NCBI GenBank assembly: GCA_904063045.1 | Contig: CAJFCJ010000012.1 | Location: 558,001 to 622,000, forward strand | DNA from: Dimorphilus gyrociliatus | Taxonomy: Eukaryota > Animalia > Annelida | Length of the DNA stretch: 64,000 bases | Direction: 5' to 3' | Shown here: positions 44,001-59,171 of the stretch, in pieces | Layout of the letters: each line of letters begins with the position of its first letter | Position numbering within the stretch: the first letter of the stretch is position 1 | Made by a program: the position numbers and the translations under genes | The notes under the pieces: model-generated | Told to the model about the DNA's origin: nothing | The model's input: only the letters and a program-made list of their open reading frames with translations | Databases searched by the model: none

Positions 44001-44501
44001 CACAATCAGACACTATTCATTTTTTCCACCCCCTCCCCCCCTCCCCACCCCTTCTTTAATAATTGCAAACTTTTTCAAGAGTAAAAGTAACCTTTTTTTT
44101 CTTTTTAGATTAGTTTTATGTCTAGAAATAGAGAAAGAAGAAAAATAACAACACAAAAATTCAATTGTCAAATTACAGTATATATAGCCTTTAAGAGAAT
44201 TCCTTTTTTTTATTTGCCTGTTTTAAGGTTAATGTATATCTATTTTTTTGTTTATTATTGCGACTTTATACGTTTATTTATATCCTTTTTCCTCTTTTTC
44301 TTTTTCTTCTTCCTCTTCTCTTTTTATAGATAGTTTGTTCCCCTTTTTTTATTATAAATTCCAAGTAGGTAAACAATTTAGCAAAAGCAAAATTATAGAT
44401 TTCGACATATATACAGTAGTTTCTTTAAAGGAAACACGCACGGACCGTCACTTCTGTTTTTTTTTTAAGGCGTTGACTTATTCGATTTTTTTTTCTTTTA
44501 G

Positions 44502-49753: not shown

Positions 49754-52700
49754 ATGTTGTCTCTATTTGGCATCCTTTTGGCTTTATTTCCATTATGCTC
49801 CACTCAGAATTTCTTGATAGGGGCTGGTATTTCAGACATGACAGGTCTTCTAAGTGAAGGCATCATGGTAAGCAAAAATAATTTCACTTTTATCTTTTAT
49901 TTCTTTATGATAAATTCCATCTTTAGTTCGGTTATGCTAAACAAGATCAAGAAGCCAGAGGCTTACATCTTAGACAATTTAGGTAAAAAGAAAAATAACA
50001 TAATTTCTATTAGTTTCGTAATTCGCCTCTTTTTTTCTATTATTACCAATATTTTTTTTTCATTATAGCCGAGCTTACGTTGTAGCTGATCGGAACGGAA
50101 ATTCTAGATTTGCACTCCTTTCAATCGAAGTTGCAACATCATCTGACGCTATAAGAGATAGCGTTAGTTTGTGTTTTTATATAATTCTATATAAATATAC
50201 AAGAAATATGAAAGAAGGAGCATAATATTTATTTAATTCTCATTTTTTAAGGTTGTTGAAAAACTAAGAGAAACATATGGCGATTTATATACGCATACAA
50301 ATGTTATGATCACTGCTCAGCATACTCATAGCGCACCTGCTGGATATCATACTTATTGGATGTTTCAAACGGCGGCAGGTGGCGGTTTTGTCAATGCTAC
50401 TTTCCAAGTATACGTTGATGCAATTGTTGATGTAAATTCATTTTTCCTTATCAATATTAACAAGCTTTCTTTAAATTTTCTCATCTATATATTACATACA
50501 TCTATATATACACCAGAGTATCAAAAAAGCTCATAATAACCTTAAACCTGGAAATGTCTTATTTAACGAGGGAGACCTTCTTAACGCCAACATAAATAGA
50601 AGTCCAGCAGCTTATTATAACAATCCTAAAGAAGAGCGGGATAAATACGAATATGACGTTGAAAAGCGTATGAGTTTGTTAAAATTTGTTGCGGAAGATG
50701 GCTCCTCCATCGGCTCTTTTAGGTCTTATTCTTTTAGTATCTCCTATTGAACTAACTGAATCTAAAATTTTTAATTTAAACAGTTTCTTTCCCGTTCATA
50801 CAACCAGCATGTTTAATAGCAATCACTTAGTCAGCTCAGATAACAAAGGGGTAGCCGCTCTCCTCATGGAGAAAGATTTGAATAATAATGCCTTCCCTGG
50901 TCAAGGATCAATTGTCACTTCTTTCGCTCAAAGCTGTCAAGGTGACGCTTCACCCAATGTTAATGGGTTTTATTGCGATACGGGAGAACCTTGTGATTAT
51001 TGGAGTGGAGCTTGCGATGACGACGTAAAAGCTATCTTATTTTTATAGAAAAACAACAAAACTAGTTACTTTTTATGAATTTTAGGTTCGTAGATGTCAA
51101 GCTAGAGGACCAGGAAGTAATATGTATGAAAATACTGTAATTATTGGTGAAAGGCAGTATAGAAAAGCAAAAGAGTTGTTTGAATCGTCTACTGAAGTTT
51201 TACAATCCGATATTGGCTCTGTTCATCAATGGGTTAATTTTACTGGCATTGAAGTAGAAAGTAACGGACAAACGGTAATTTTATTGAAAAAATCTATACC
51301 TTTTGAAAAATAGCCGATAACACCGACTTTTTCTTTTACTCTGTTAGTATAAAACTTGTGCTCCAGCAATGGGTTACAGTTTTGCCGCAGGTGCCGTTGA
51401 TGGCCCAGCTCTTGGACCACCTTTCGTTCAAGGTATTTTAAAAAGAAGAAAAATAACATTTTAATTTGATAATAATTATCTTATCATTTTCCATGGCTAT
51501 TTAAGGACTAAATGAAAGTGATCCAGTTATTGATACTATTCGTGATCTGATTTTGCCTGCATCTGAAGAATTGTTAGCTTGTCATGAACCAAAACCAATC
51601 TTAATTTCATCTGGAGAAGTAACTTGAAAAAATTTTCATTATATTCATTATTTCTACTACAAGATTTTATCTATAGGCTGATGATGAATGGCCATGGCAA
51701 CCGGAAGTATTACCTTTGCAAGTGTTTAGACTAGGCAGACTAATTATACTTGGCATTCCAGCAGAAGTAACGTAAGATATTTAGTCTAAAAAATATAAAA
51801 AGTTATCTTTTCACTAAATATTATCTTTGTGCCATCAAACAATATTTTTTTTTTACTTTTAAATATAGAACAATGTCATCTAGAAGATTTGTTGCTGCAT
51901 CTGAACAGGTGTTCTTGTTTACATGTATAGAAGATTATTTATATTCTTATACTAAGAATGTTTACAGGTTATGAGAGAAAATGGTATTGATAACCCGAAA
52001 GTTATCGTTGCTGGCGTTACAAATATGTATATTAATTATATCGTCACACCTGAAGAATACGAGGTTAATAAGTTTTTTAAGTATTAATAATCAATGTACG
52101 ATTTATTGTCATATTTTTAATGGTATTGTTACAGATACAAAGATACGAGGGAGCGTCTACTGTTTTTGGACAATATACTCTTAATGCCTATATAGAAAAG
52201 TTGAAACCTATGATCCAGTCCCTTATTCGCGTAATATAGCAAATTTCCAAAAGATATTTTTAGAATCTATTTTAAGATTTCTAATTAAATCTAATTTAAT
52301 TTTATGTAGGGTGAGGCCGTTGAGCCTGGAACACCTCCTCCAGATTTGAGAGATAAACCTGAAGAAATTTTAGAACCCATTAGAACTGATCTCACCCCGA
52401 ATGGATTTGACTTTGGAGATGTTTTGAATAATACAAACGAAGCTTATAAACAAAATGAAACTGTTACAGTTGTATTTGTATGCGGAAATCCAAGAAATAA
52501 TTTAATGGTATTATAAATTTAGCGCTATATTTCTTTCATTAGATTTTATGATTAATAATTCTTCCCTTTTCTTTTTCAGACTGGAAATACTTTCCTAACT
52601 GTTGAAAAAGAAAATGGTGGTTCATGGACAACTGTTTTTACAGATGCTCATATCGAAACAAGATACTATTGGGAATCAAACTGCGAAGATGACGAAGGAG

Positions 52701-53541: not shown

Positions 53542-55884
53542 TTACAACTTCCAGCAATTTCTCATCATTAAATCGAACTGGATATCCTTGTCGAAATTGG
53601 AACTTATACCTCTGTAGTAGTCGAGGAATTCTTTCCATGTTACCTATAATTAAAATCAATATTAGTATTTTAATGTATCAATTAGTGAGAAAACTCCAGA
53701 AACGATAACTACTACTTACTGTCTCATCCAGAACACCTCCTTGTTGAAAATTATTTAAGAATTCTTTATAGACTCTGTTTGCACTCCACTCTCCCGATAT
53801 GTACTTTGGATGCTTTTTATACTCATATTGTCTCTTTAAATCCTCTATAGTAATAACTCCATCACCAGTAACATCTAGTTTTTGGAAAGCTTTCTCAATC
53901 AATTTGATCCTGCCATCACTCATGTTAGGCTGTTTAAATTTACAAAAATTGTTCAAATTAGTTCTCAACAAATAGTGAACGTTTACAAAGGCCAATAAAA
54001 CATTTATTTTATATATATAAATGTATATATATAAAATTTTATCACTAAAAGGAAAAAAATTGATCAAACCCTGATTTTTTCAATGAATTCGTTAACACTG
54101 ATGTGACCACTTTTATCCTTATCGAAATATGAAAACATCTCAGTGATGTCTCCCTCGCTAATGTTGACTCCATAGTCGTGTATTCCCTGAAAAAGATGAA
54201 GAATTTAAGCGAAAGTCCAACAAAGTAACGTAATAGATAACATATAAATATATATATACAGTATATATAGTGTACGCTTATTGGGGTAATTCTATAAACG
54301 TTTAATTAAACAATAAATTATTGATTAACGGTAGTAAATGTAAAGGAAAATTTTCGAAACATAGGTGCCTATCCTACTGTTATTTTATTTATAAATGATT
54401 ATATTTGTATAGAAAACTGCCAAAACTATACAGTACCTTTTTATATGTATAACAATAAAAATTTTAGAAAGACTTTATTAAAGTCTTTAAGCTTCTATTG
54501 TGGAAAAATAAAAAGATATACAGTATATCTAGATAAATTTAGGTATATTAATGGATATTCTGTACATTTAAAAGTAATGAATTATACAAAGGCATTCAAT
54601 TTTTATCTATATATTATTCAAGTATTCCTATTATATTCTATAATTGTTAGAAAGTATAAAATAAAACAGAAGAAAATAAATGAATTCAACTATAATTCAT
54701 TACTATTTATTAGCTTTTATTTATTTTCCTACTTTCTGCAAAGTGCCATGATTCTATTAATTCGTAAACCGACAACTTTATTATAAGATAATTCTAATAA
54801 GATTAGTATTTATTCTTGAACACGTTTTACTAAATAATATCTTACAGTTGGGTAAGCTTTTTCCTGTGTCAGAATACATATTCGCTTATATTAATATAAG
54901 AATATATAGCGTTTAGATATCTTATAAAGTGTATAAAACACGTATCACCGAGATTCGTCATGTAATCTCTAGTATGTCGTGATTTTTAACAATTGTTAGT
55001 ATAACGATTAGAATATCTATCTTAAGCCTATATGCTACCTTTTATACAGCTGCTTTTAAAGAGTTTTTATTAACTTAATTAAAGGTTTGACAGTTTATTG
55101 ATTAAGATTCTATAAGATATCTATAGCTTTACCTTATTAAAATCCTAATGACTAGTTTTATGAATTAAATTCAATAACTAAATAAAAAAGAGATAGAAAT
55201 TTCTATTCAAATGCTAATAGTATACACCTTTATCTTCAATATGAAAGAGAGAGAAAGGCTGATGGACAAAAAAAGACTGATGTTCTAGGCTATAATCTTA
55301 TATGAATTGTTAACTATAAGACTAACTATTTGTCTTTCTAACTCATGGCCAAAAATTGTAAATATATGCCATTTTTTGTCAATAGATAAATTGCATTTCT
55401 ATATTGCATAAGACAGAACAAAGAAATGCAGGAGAAGAGGAAGTAGCAGGGAATGATGGGAATATATTTAGAGAAACAGTCCGTGTTTTTCTAATGAGAG
55501 ATGGAAGAAGGATTGCAAGGGAGAGATTTAAAAACAATATATTATACCTTTCCAAATTCTTCTCTACTCAAATATTTGCTGCCATCGTCATCATAGATTC
55601 TAAATGTTCTGTATAGAAAATAACCAATAATTATTATTTAAAGCATATGGTACAGTTTTTTTTCTGGGCTGTTGGAAGCAGTACAGTCTATTATAGAGAA
55701 AGAAATTTTATCGAAGCAATTTTTCCACAGTTAGACATAAAAAATGTTGATAAATTTAAAGGAAAACCTTTGTATATATTAGTAAATACTAATGTACAAA
55801 CCTAGATAAGCTTCTAATGCCATTTACACCTCTTTTTTTACAAGCGTCTCTCAAAAGCTGAACGCCAGCAGGCTCAGTTTCCAT
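53542..55884 (-). CDS. CAPSL: Calcyphosine-like EF-hand protein, 190 aa. Exons 55884-55802, 55608-55548, 54186-54070, 53929-53720, 53643-53542
   Basis: LRDACKKRGVNGIRSLSRTFRIYDDDGSKYLS, FDKDKSGHISVNEF, LDVTGDGVITIEDL, HPKYISGE and VTWKEFLDYYRGIS...FDLMMRNCWKL are calcyphosine-family hallmarks. Confidence 0.95.
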
Positions 55885-57126: not shown

Positions 57127-59171
57127 CTATATATTCCCTTTATTTACAAGATCTTTAGTGTTTGTCTGCTTAGTCGCTCCAATATGTCTTCTCTCAGTCT
57201 TACTTAACATCAACCATCTTGTACCGAATTGGGCTGCAATTAAGTTTAGAGCCATGAAGCCAAAGAGTACAACAAAAGCACACTTAGACCAAACATTAAC
57301 CGTTACTGCATAAATTGCCAAACTGATAGAAACTCCTAACAATGTTGATAGGTGAGAAGCTGCCAGACTGACAGCCAACAGTTTACCAATCTCATCACTA
57401 TCAACTAATTGGGTACAAGCTCCTCTAATGGTTGATAGAACTCCCCCACCACCAGCTCCGATTAGTGTAGCTAAGAAAAGAGTCCAGGTACTAGTAGCAC
57501 CCCACCAAATAACCAAAAGTTCCAACGACTTGCAGAATATGCCAGTTAGAATAATCTTTCTATCATCCACACCTTTAGACTGAAGTGTAGGAAGGATTAA
57601 TATACAGACTATCGCTAATCCTCCGAACGTAGCTGCTCTCCAATAACAATAAGTAGCCCTTTTTAAATATTTAGTAATTAAATATTTGACCAAAACCTGA
57701 CAATATTAACGTTAAATAGATTTAATTATCGAATTTTAGAATAATTCTTATAAATATTTAAAGAGGGAGACTTTGTCCATAGCAATGGTTTTCTTCTACA
57801 AAAGACAAGAACTAATTCTTCGGTAGCTGAAATGCAAGATTTATGAACACATCCCATGAAAATAAGCAACCAAAGCGCGTGTTTTCCTTCTCTTTCCTTT
57901 CTCAGAGTCTCAAAAGTTTTCTTTGCTTCGCTCATTTCACAGCCGTTACTCTTCTCATGCTCTTCTCTCTTAGAAAAAACTATGGACAAAACTGTCCCTA
58001 AGATTAATACCAACACAACGATATAAACTGATCCTCCACCATCGTAATCAACTAATGAAGCTGCTAATAATGAGCCGAATAAATTAGCTACATTTTGCAC
58101 ACCTGAGAATAATGTATAATTTCTTAGCCATCCAATAAAACCAATATTCTAATTGGTCAATACACAAACAATGTAAATGATACAAATTAGCTATGTCTAT
58201 AATTAATATAGTTTAACTAATCATGAAAAGAGATGCAACAAATTGAAACTTTTCTGTTTGTCTTTTAACACGTTTTCCTTTCTTTCTCTCTCTTTCTCTC
58301 TCTCTCTCATTATTAATATAGACTAGTTGTTTGTTTTTCTCATTTAAATGACAATAGGTCCTTTCTAAGGTAAAAATTAAAAAAGAAACAATAGTCATAT
58401 TTGAAATATTCAATAGGGAAAGAAGAGGAAAATGGAAAAAGAAGAAAAGTAAGTATTTCTAAGGAAAAGGATTAGAAAATTTCATATTTTAATATTCCAT
58501 TAAAGTTCAAAATTATGTTTTCCACGAAAATTTCCCTCTTTACTTCTAAATAGATGTACTGACGCCAAACTAAATGTTTTCTTTATATTTGATACTCTAG
58601 TAATTTTTTATCTTTGTACATTTTATTCTTAAAGTTAATCTCTTAAGAAATTACACATACCCTCCATAACATTATATCTCTTTGTTCTATTATCTTCTCC
58701 TATTCTATCGGCAAGATATCCAAAACAGGCTACACTTAGCAAAAATCCAGGTGCTAAACTTCCTTGAACAAATCCACTTATCAGTAACGGAATGCCATAA
58801 CTTTTTCCCAGAATAGCTGTATCTACCATTGCTAAAATTGAAGAAATAACAGTACCAAAACATACCATTAACATTGGAGTTCTTCTACCAATTTTATCAC
58901 TGCTAGCCCCAAAGATTATCCCTAGAATGAGTGTAGGAATTTCCAAGCAAGTTTTATATCCCATAAGATAAGTAGAAGATCTGGCTTGTAAAAGTTTATT
59001 ATTTATATTATCACTTGAACAGTTAACTCTATCAAGTAAGTCCCAACACGATCGTTCATAGAGTAGAAGTTTAGTAACTGGCTCCTTAGCCTTATCAGCG
59101 GTATCGTAAAAGAATAGAACAATTTCCGCCAAATATGAGGAGAGAAAATCACTAATACATGCCCAAGTCAT
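57127..59171 (-). CDS. SLC46 (PCFT/HCP1-like) MFS transporter, about 457 aa. Exons 59171-58661, 58102-57772, 57658-57127
   Basis: GASSDKIGRRTPM (MFS motif A), FGYLADR, PLLWTKATYCYWRAA (gap-free match to PCFT-type PLCWDSKLIGYGSAA) and IRGACTQLVDSDEIGKL. The second intron has a non-consensus GTCTCC donor (see findings). Confidence 0.85.
57657..57767. mobile_element. 111-bp MITE-like element with 17-bp terminal inverted repeats and a 2-bp AG target duplication, inside the SLC46 coding sequence
   Basis: Left end ccctttttaaatattta; right end taaatatttaaagaggg (reverse complement ccctctttaaatattta, 16/17 identical). AG occurs at 57655-57656 and 57768-57769. Confidence 0.65.

Follow-up and report, generated by a model that had tools for sequence, protein, structure and literature searches.

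Introners, which occur in Micromonas, fungi, dinoflagellates and other lineages, are defined by the presence of many similar copies in one genome (PMC11282704). The intron analysed here, in an SLC46/PCFT-like gene of the annelid Dimorphilus gyrociliatus, resembles introners in its terminal inverted repeats, its short flanking repeat, its apparently lineage-specific position, and in taking one splice site from the flank and the other from the repeat (PMC11282704). It is unlike introners in that its sequence is unique in the 78-Mb genome and is common to a diverged relative, hence there has been no recent burst. MITE-derived introns have also been described in an animal, Fritillaria borealis (Henriet et al. 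2019, as summarized in PMC11282704), where they occupy species-specific sites and are thought to derive from inverted repeats. According to the same summary, however, the Fritillaria introns are numerous, have non-GT/AG borders and depend on an altered spliceosome, whereas the focal intron is GT-AG and single-copy (PMC11282704). The nonconventional introns of euglenids likewise lack a pyrimidine tract, have ends whose pairing joins the borders, and carry short repeats at their junctions (PMC11282704, PMC12501133). Their borders are non-canonical and their pairing is short and fixed, +4 to +6 with –8 to –6 (PMC11282704, PMC12501133), in contrast to the canonical GT-AG borders and the helix of ~20 bp in the focal intron. 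No description of introns clamped by a hairpin in annelids was found in the literature.

The host gene is an SLC46/PCFT-like MFS gene on the minus strand of a 64-kb stretch of D. gyrociliatus DNA, the whole of which is called the window; all positions are window coordinates unless another locus is named. The gene has three exons and two introns:

58661–59171, minus strand: exon 1, with the ATG at 59171; 170 codons plus one base, equal to residues 1–170 of the public protein P0057
58103–58660, minus strand: intron 1, 558 nt, donor GTATGT; ordinary, served as control
57772–58102, minus strand: exon 2; its translation equals residues 172–280 of P0057
57659–57771, minus strand: the focal intron, 113 nt, phase 2, GC content 19%, donor AAA/GTCTCC, acceptor AAAAAG/GG, no pyrimidine tract
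57127–57658, minus strand: exon 3, with the stop codon TAG at 57129–57127; its translation equals residues 282–457 of P0057

A word search starting from exon 1 reached a protein cluster containing CAD5120126.1, the 457-residue product of DgyrCDS8704 from D. gyrociliatus (P0057). The corresponding search with exon 3 gave no matches. The cluster of P0056 and P0057 is represented by a 207-residue fragment of exon 1, although the annotated protein has 457 residues, and a search of representatives with exon 3 therefore cannot find its own gene. The absence of matches is uninformative in this case, and any claim built on a lack of relatives can be misled in this way. Each of the three exons gives a weak Pfam match to MFS_1. 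Against PDB, the whole protein matches chicken PCFT only (7BC6; E 1.9e-07, residues 85–431), and because this is the only solved relative, labelling the host gene as a divergent member of SLC46 is reasonable. The nearest relatives outside the dinophilids are only ~30% identical to its protein, and the gene is not named in the supplements of PMC7854359.

The borders of the focal intron are GT at 57771–57770 and AG at 57660–57659 on the minus strand. The first-pass annotation, made from the sequence of the window, had predicted that splicing from GT (57771) to AG (57659) would give WTKATYCYW, and this is exactly the junction of P0057, which reads PLLWTKATYCYW. Its second product, WTKSTYCYW, obtained by deleting the inverted-repeat element plus one flanking CT, is also reproduced and likewise requires the removal of 113 nt. 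Either product aligns without gaps to two paralogues, 13 homologues and chicken PCFT, in agreement with the PCFT-type alignment proposed at that stage. Removal from GT to AG thus keeps the frame and matches the mature protein, as expected of a U2-type intron. In the published annotation transcript assemblies were weighted 10 times over ab initio models (PMC7854359), so that transcript support behind the public DgyrCDS8704 junction is likely. The public gene model and the conservation described below indicate that the segment is a real U2-type GT-AG intron. The last 16 nt ahead of exon 3 (CTAAATATTTAAAAAG, ending in AG) consist of 10 A, 4 T, 1 C and 1 G. The earlier view that the donor GTCTCC is unlike the others in the window holds for the CC at positions +5/+6, which is found in none of the eight other donors (GTAAAA, GTTAGT, GTAAAT, GTCTTA, GTAAAA, GTAATT, GTATGT and GTTTGT), but not for the C at +3, which one of the eight, GTCTTA, shares. 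Since donors are loose here and a neighbour uses GTCTTA, GTCTCC is less extreme than it appears. That neighbour is a 61-nt intron at 50723–50783 on the plus strand, in a neutral-ceramidase-like gene. A U12-type identity was considered and rejected: the donor GTCTCCCT has no A at +3, as compared to the consensus [AG]TATCCTT, and the branch site TCCTTAAC is absent from the 3′ 45 nt of the intron.

The elements around the two splice sites are as follows:

57770–57773, minus strand: AAGT over the 5′ splice site, which pairs with ACTT in exon 3 (57651–57654) and lengthens the helix
57768–57769, minus strand: CT at the 5′ arm; together with the second CT, either a putative duplication of 2 bp or an internal loop (2x2) of the helix
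57751–57767, minus strand: 5′ arm of the inverted repeat, CCCTCTTTAAATATTTA, beginning at intron position +5
57671–57676, minus strand: TACTAA, which resembles a branch point (a sequence match only) and lies 18 nt from the intron's 3′ end
57657–57673, minus strand: 3′ arm of the inverted repeat, which includes the AG acceptor and extends 2 nt into exon 3
57655–57656, minus strand: CT at the 3′ arm, within exon 3

The anatomy given in the first-pass annotation, a 111-bp segment bounded by 17-nt inverted repeats with one mismatch and flanked by CT on the coding strand, is borne out: the arms at 57751–57767 and 57657–57673 are complementary at 16 of 17 positions, and the flanking dinucleotides lie at 57769–57768 and 57656–57655. 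Outside the CT/CT loop the helix resumes with AAGT/ACTT, giving 20 bp over 23 positions and enclosing both splice sites. The predicted fold of the intron with its flanks runs from one end to the other and has –27 kcal/mol (z –3.7). Eight neighbouring introns defined by hand have terminal pairing of 8–13 of 17 and fold z-scores of –1.2 to +1.4, compared to 16 of 17 and –3.3 to –3.7 for the focal intron, whose sole GC-rich runs are located in the arms. The core of the arms, AAATATTT, is a palindromic AT 8-mer with three copies in the 113 nt, so part of the repeat could stem from local duplication. In the whole window there are 30 copies of it, versus 18.7 expected. The last two copies in the intron are 15 nt apart, resembling a small tandem duplication, and the middle copy is not retained in the relative described below.

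The position of the intron appears to be lineage-specific, in agreement with the earlier reading as a new intron. Two paralogues on one contig of the assembly (G000 C13; L034:682-2133:+ and L033:1399-2859:-) each consist of one open frame (483 and 486 residues); they are intronless, ~28–30% identical to the window gene and uninterrupted across the site. Homologues present as plain ORFs on genomic contigs of 21 kb and 65 kb are also uninterrupted and gapless through it, and the alignment of all 15 sequences spanning the site has no gaps. Because the coding sequence is continuous here in paralogues and homologues, the comparison points to a lineage-specific gain as the likely history. Immediately after the junction, 10 of the 15 have Ser and 4 have Ala, and therefore both the spliced product and the reconstruction of the empty site fit. 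Four homologous ORF calls from other organisms (P0021, P0027, P0029 and P0037) all begin at one column with M[CT]KSGE, and this common start, ~23 residues upstream of the focal site, suggests that other invertebrates share an intron just upstream that is missing in the D. gyrociliatus gene.

A relative of D. gyrociliatus bears on the age of the intron. A Logan genomic contig of 2668 nt from this relative carries three ORF calls that correspond to the three exons:

P0058: exon 1, reading through the same donor into intron 1
P0060: exon 2, with the terminus ...WTKSPSLNI*
P0059: MSVFSQIIINKYLKR, followed by exon 3

Protein identity to the focal gene is 94, 89 and 92% for exons 1, 2 and 3, without gaps. 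One of the paralogues has an orthologue in the related lineage that is 87% identical (P0002), and the relative is therefore a distinct lineage. The peptide SPSLNI is the translated donor plus 5′ arm and KYLKR is the translated 3′ arm, and both are compatible with unchanged arms. In a codon-aware alignment the arms need no changes, whereas 28 nt of adjoining interior needs at least four substitutions and one indel. The relative's intron is seen solely as translated read-through, which hides third codon positions and leaves compensatory changes invisible in this comparison. The first 17 nt of the ordinary intron 1 are likewise conserved in the relative, and intron ends are usually conserved anyway. 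The focal intron is retained in the relative, including both arms as far as the ORF read-throughs show. Because a relative with ~8% protein divergence keeps it, the intron predates the split; judged from these translations it is not recent, contrary to what had been proposed.

We consider it probable, with moderate confidence, that the segment is a routinely spliced, gained intron of the U2 type (GT-AG) in DgyrCDS8704, older than the split from the relative, and that its ~20-bp end helix aids its removal. On this account the intron would have been gained in the lineage of the host gene ahead of the split from the ~8% diverged relative. Its splice signals are poor, with a donor, GTCTCC, that offers little complementarity to U1, and an A-rich 3′ end in which a pyrimidine tract is absent. 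The two ends of the intron, plus 4 exonic nt on either side, pair as a helix around the splice sites, which would bring the two sites together and may have been retained as an aid to removal, in a form of structure-assisted splicing. In yeast, splicing is helped by complementary intron segments, which on pairing bring the splice signals effectively closer together. The yeast pairing joins the donor region with the branch point in long introns and does not run across both splice sites, as it does in the 113-nt focal intron. The end helix probably helps splicing. Against a helper role, it buries the donor GU, and an obstruction of U1 binding is as plausible as a benefit to splicing. The pairing may also be a footprint of the palindromic DNA that made the intron; the route of origin may have been palindromic or transposon DNA.

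A more specific route would be that a 111-bp non-autonomous element with terminal inverted repeats inserted at CT within AAG TCT ACT, duplicated the CT, and was then spliced from the exonic GT to the AG in its far repeat, changing Ser to Ala. We regard this as rather unlikely, although several features favour it. The terminal repeat (16/17) has CT at either flank, the whole segment folds as a hairpin like many MITEs, and paralogues and homologues are intron-free at the site. The empty-site reconstruction gives Ser, the commonest residue at that column (10 of 15 homologues), and single transposon-derived introns are known (PMC11282704). One point against it is the copy number. A BLAST search with 131 nt (E up to 10) of the 78-Mb assembly returned only the self match. 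The 17-mer arm with at most one mismatch has 31 matches in the 78-Mb genome, as compared to 22 for a reversed-pattern control, with neither an inverted partner nor extended similarity. The 11-nt arm-pair pattern with a gap of 40–400 nt occurs once genome-wide. The element is single-copy in the 78-Mb genome and therefore belongs to no introner or MITE family; the designation "introner-like" in the first-pass annotation has to be given up. The identity of the two CT dinucleotides arises by chance in ~1 of 16 cases and is weak evidence for a target-site duplication, and the pairing extends past the supposed duplication into host codons (AAGT/ACTT), which such a duplication does not predict. Mariner elements duplicate TA and MULE elements make a long duplication; neither is known to make a CT duplication. 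These are the DNA transposons reported from the D. gyrociliatus genome (PMC7854359). A MITE of these resident transposons is not supported, as the flanks are CT rather than TA and the arm pair is seen nowhere else at gaps of 40–400 nt. Ends of the piggyBac type were also considered, for which TTAA is expected; the CCCT termini are present but TTAA is not. A duplication of AAAG would remove 112 nt and break the frame. Since the insertion would be old, any transposon family could have decayed. What stands of the proposed transposon-derived intron is a spliced intron with terminal repeats; with no copy of a family in the genome, a transposon origin is possible but unproven.

It could instead be argued that the intron is ordinary and that its terminal inverted repeat arose by coincidence in AT-rich sequence and serves no function. 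We put pairing by chance alone at roughly one in five. Its splice sites are canonical GT-AG and donors in this genome are degenerate, and the arm core is the common palindromic 8-mer, in excess in the window as given above. The chance rate of such a terminal repeat is estimated at ~5e-5 per intron, which for ~70,000 introns, assuming ~5 introns for each of the 14,203 annotated loci (PMC7854359), leads to an expectation of a few chance cases genome-wide. On the other hand, when the intron was shuffled 20000 times with its dinucleotide composition preserved, leaving out exon flanks and allowing end offsets of at most 6 nt, no shuffle reached 16/17, a value that the real intron attains only with 6-nt exon flanks, because the 3′ arm extends 2 nt into exon 3; on the same measure without flanks the real intron scores 14/17, which ~0.2% of shuffles equal. 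The window holds five non-microsatellite inverted repeats of similar quality, compared to ~0.7 in shuffled windows. The strong predicted fold as opposed to values near zero in the neighbouring introns, the confinement of the GC-rich runs to the arms in an intron of 19% GC, the unchanged arms beside a changed interior in the relative, and the co-occurrence of the repeat with a poor donor and an absent pyrimidine tract all argue against coincidence. The first-pass annotation had also offered a MITE-disrupted allele, in which the insert is retained and the gene is dead in the assembly. In-frame stops 15 codons into the insert and the weak donor would agree with this, but the public model splices the insert out, and the relative, with the same insert, keeps all three exons open and gapless at 89–94% identity. 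Because the intron is kept and the exons are intact in both lineages, we regard a disrupted allele or pseudogene as very improbable; the search for a presence/absence polymorphism gave no alternative haplotype contig, and hence no empty-site haplotig, in the assembly. It is hardly credible that the excised hairpin becomes a microRNA, as in a mirtron, even though the pre-mRNA would form an end-to-end hairpin. In isolation, the excised intron folds with a 5′ tail of 9 nt and an AU stem that is weak (–15.4 kcal/mol), and there is no Rfam match with E up to 1. At 113 nt it is also long for an invertebrate mirtron.

Returning to the preferred reading of a gained, routinely spliced intron with an assisting end helix, it is possible, and we suggest it tentatively, that the intron belongs to a genome-wide class of recently gained, hairpin-clamped introns of D. 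gyrociliatus in which end pairing partly replaces splice signals. By analogy, such a class would be an animal counterpart of the euglenid nonconventional introns. In its anatomy, in its lineage-specific position and in the conservation of its arms, the focal intron is what such a class would predict. In a census of ORF interruptions bounded by repeats, covering the 64-kb window and 95 kb of other loci, the focal intron alone reached 16/17 and a mirror control gave none; at ~160 kb the census is too small for any estimate of class frequency. Taken alone, this is a modest case: a poorly conserved transporter gene has gained an intron whose ends pair. The result removes an introner label that was attractive yet unsupported, and adds a data point for paired ends on an intron that retains GT-AG borders. 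If the class is real, members of this kind would bridge ordinary and non-canonical introns in a compact annelid genome, and would offer a simple animal substrate for testing whether end pairing can compensate for weak splice signals.

Other pairings were seen in the same material. At 44129–44317 on the plus strand, inside an intron of ~243 nt, a purine-rich stretch that lies 43 nt away from the donor is complementary at 15 of 17 positions to the pyrimidine tract just 5′ of the acceptor. At 54570–54707 a 16/17 inverted repeat spans 138 nt in the interior of a long intron of an EF-hand (calcyphosine-like) gene, off the borders. Outside the window, at locus L023 (G000 C19:1411267-1414283), a candidate 126-nt ORF interruption (938–1063) is bounded by a 15/17 inverted repeat; near it, at about position 949 on the minus strand, the scan of ORF pairs found a candidate donor, AAC/GTATCCTG, that resembles the U12 consensus.
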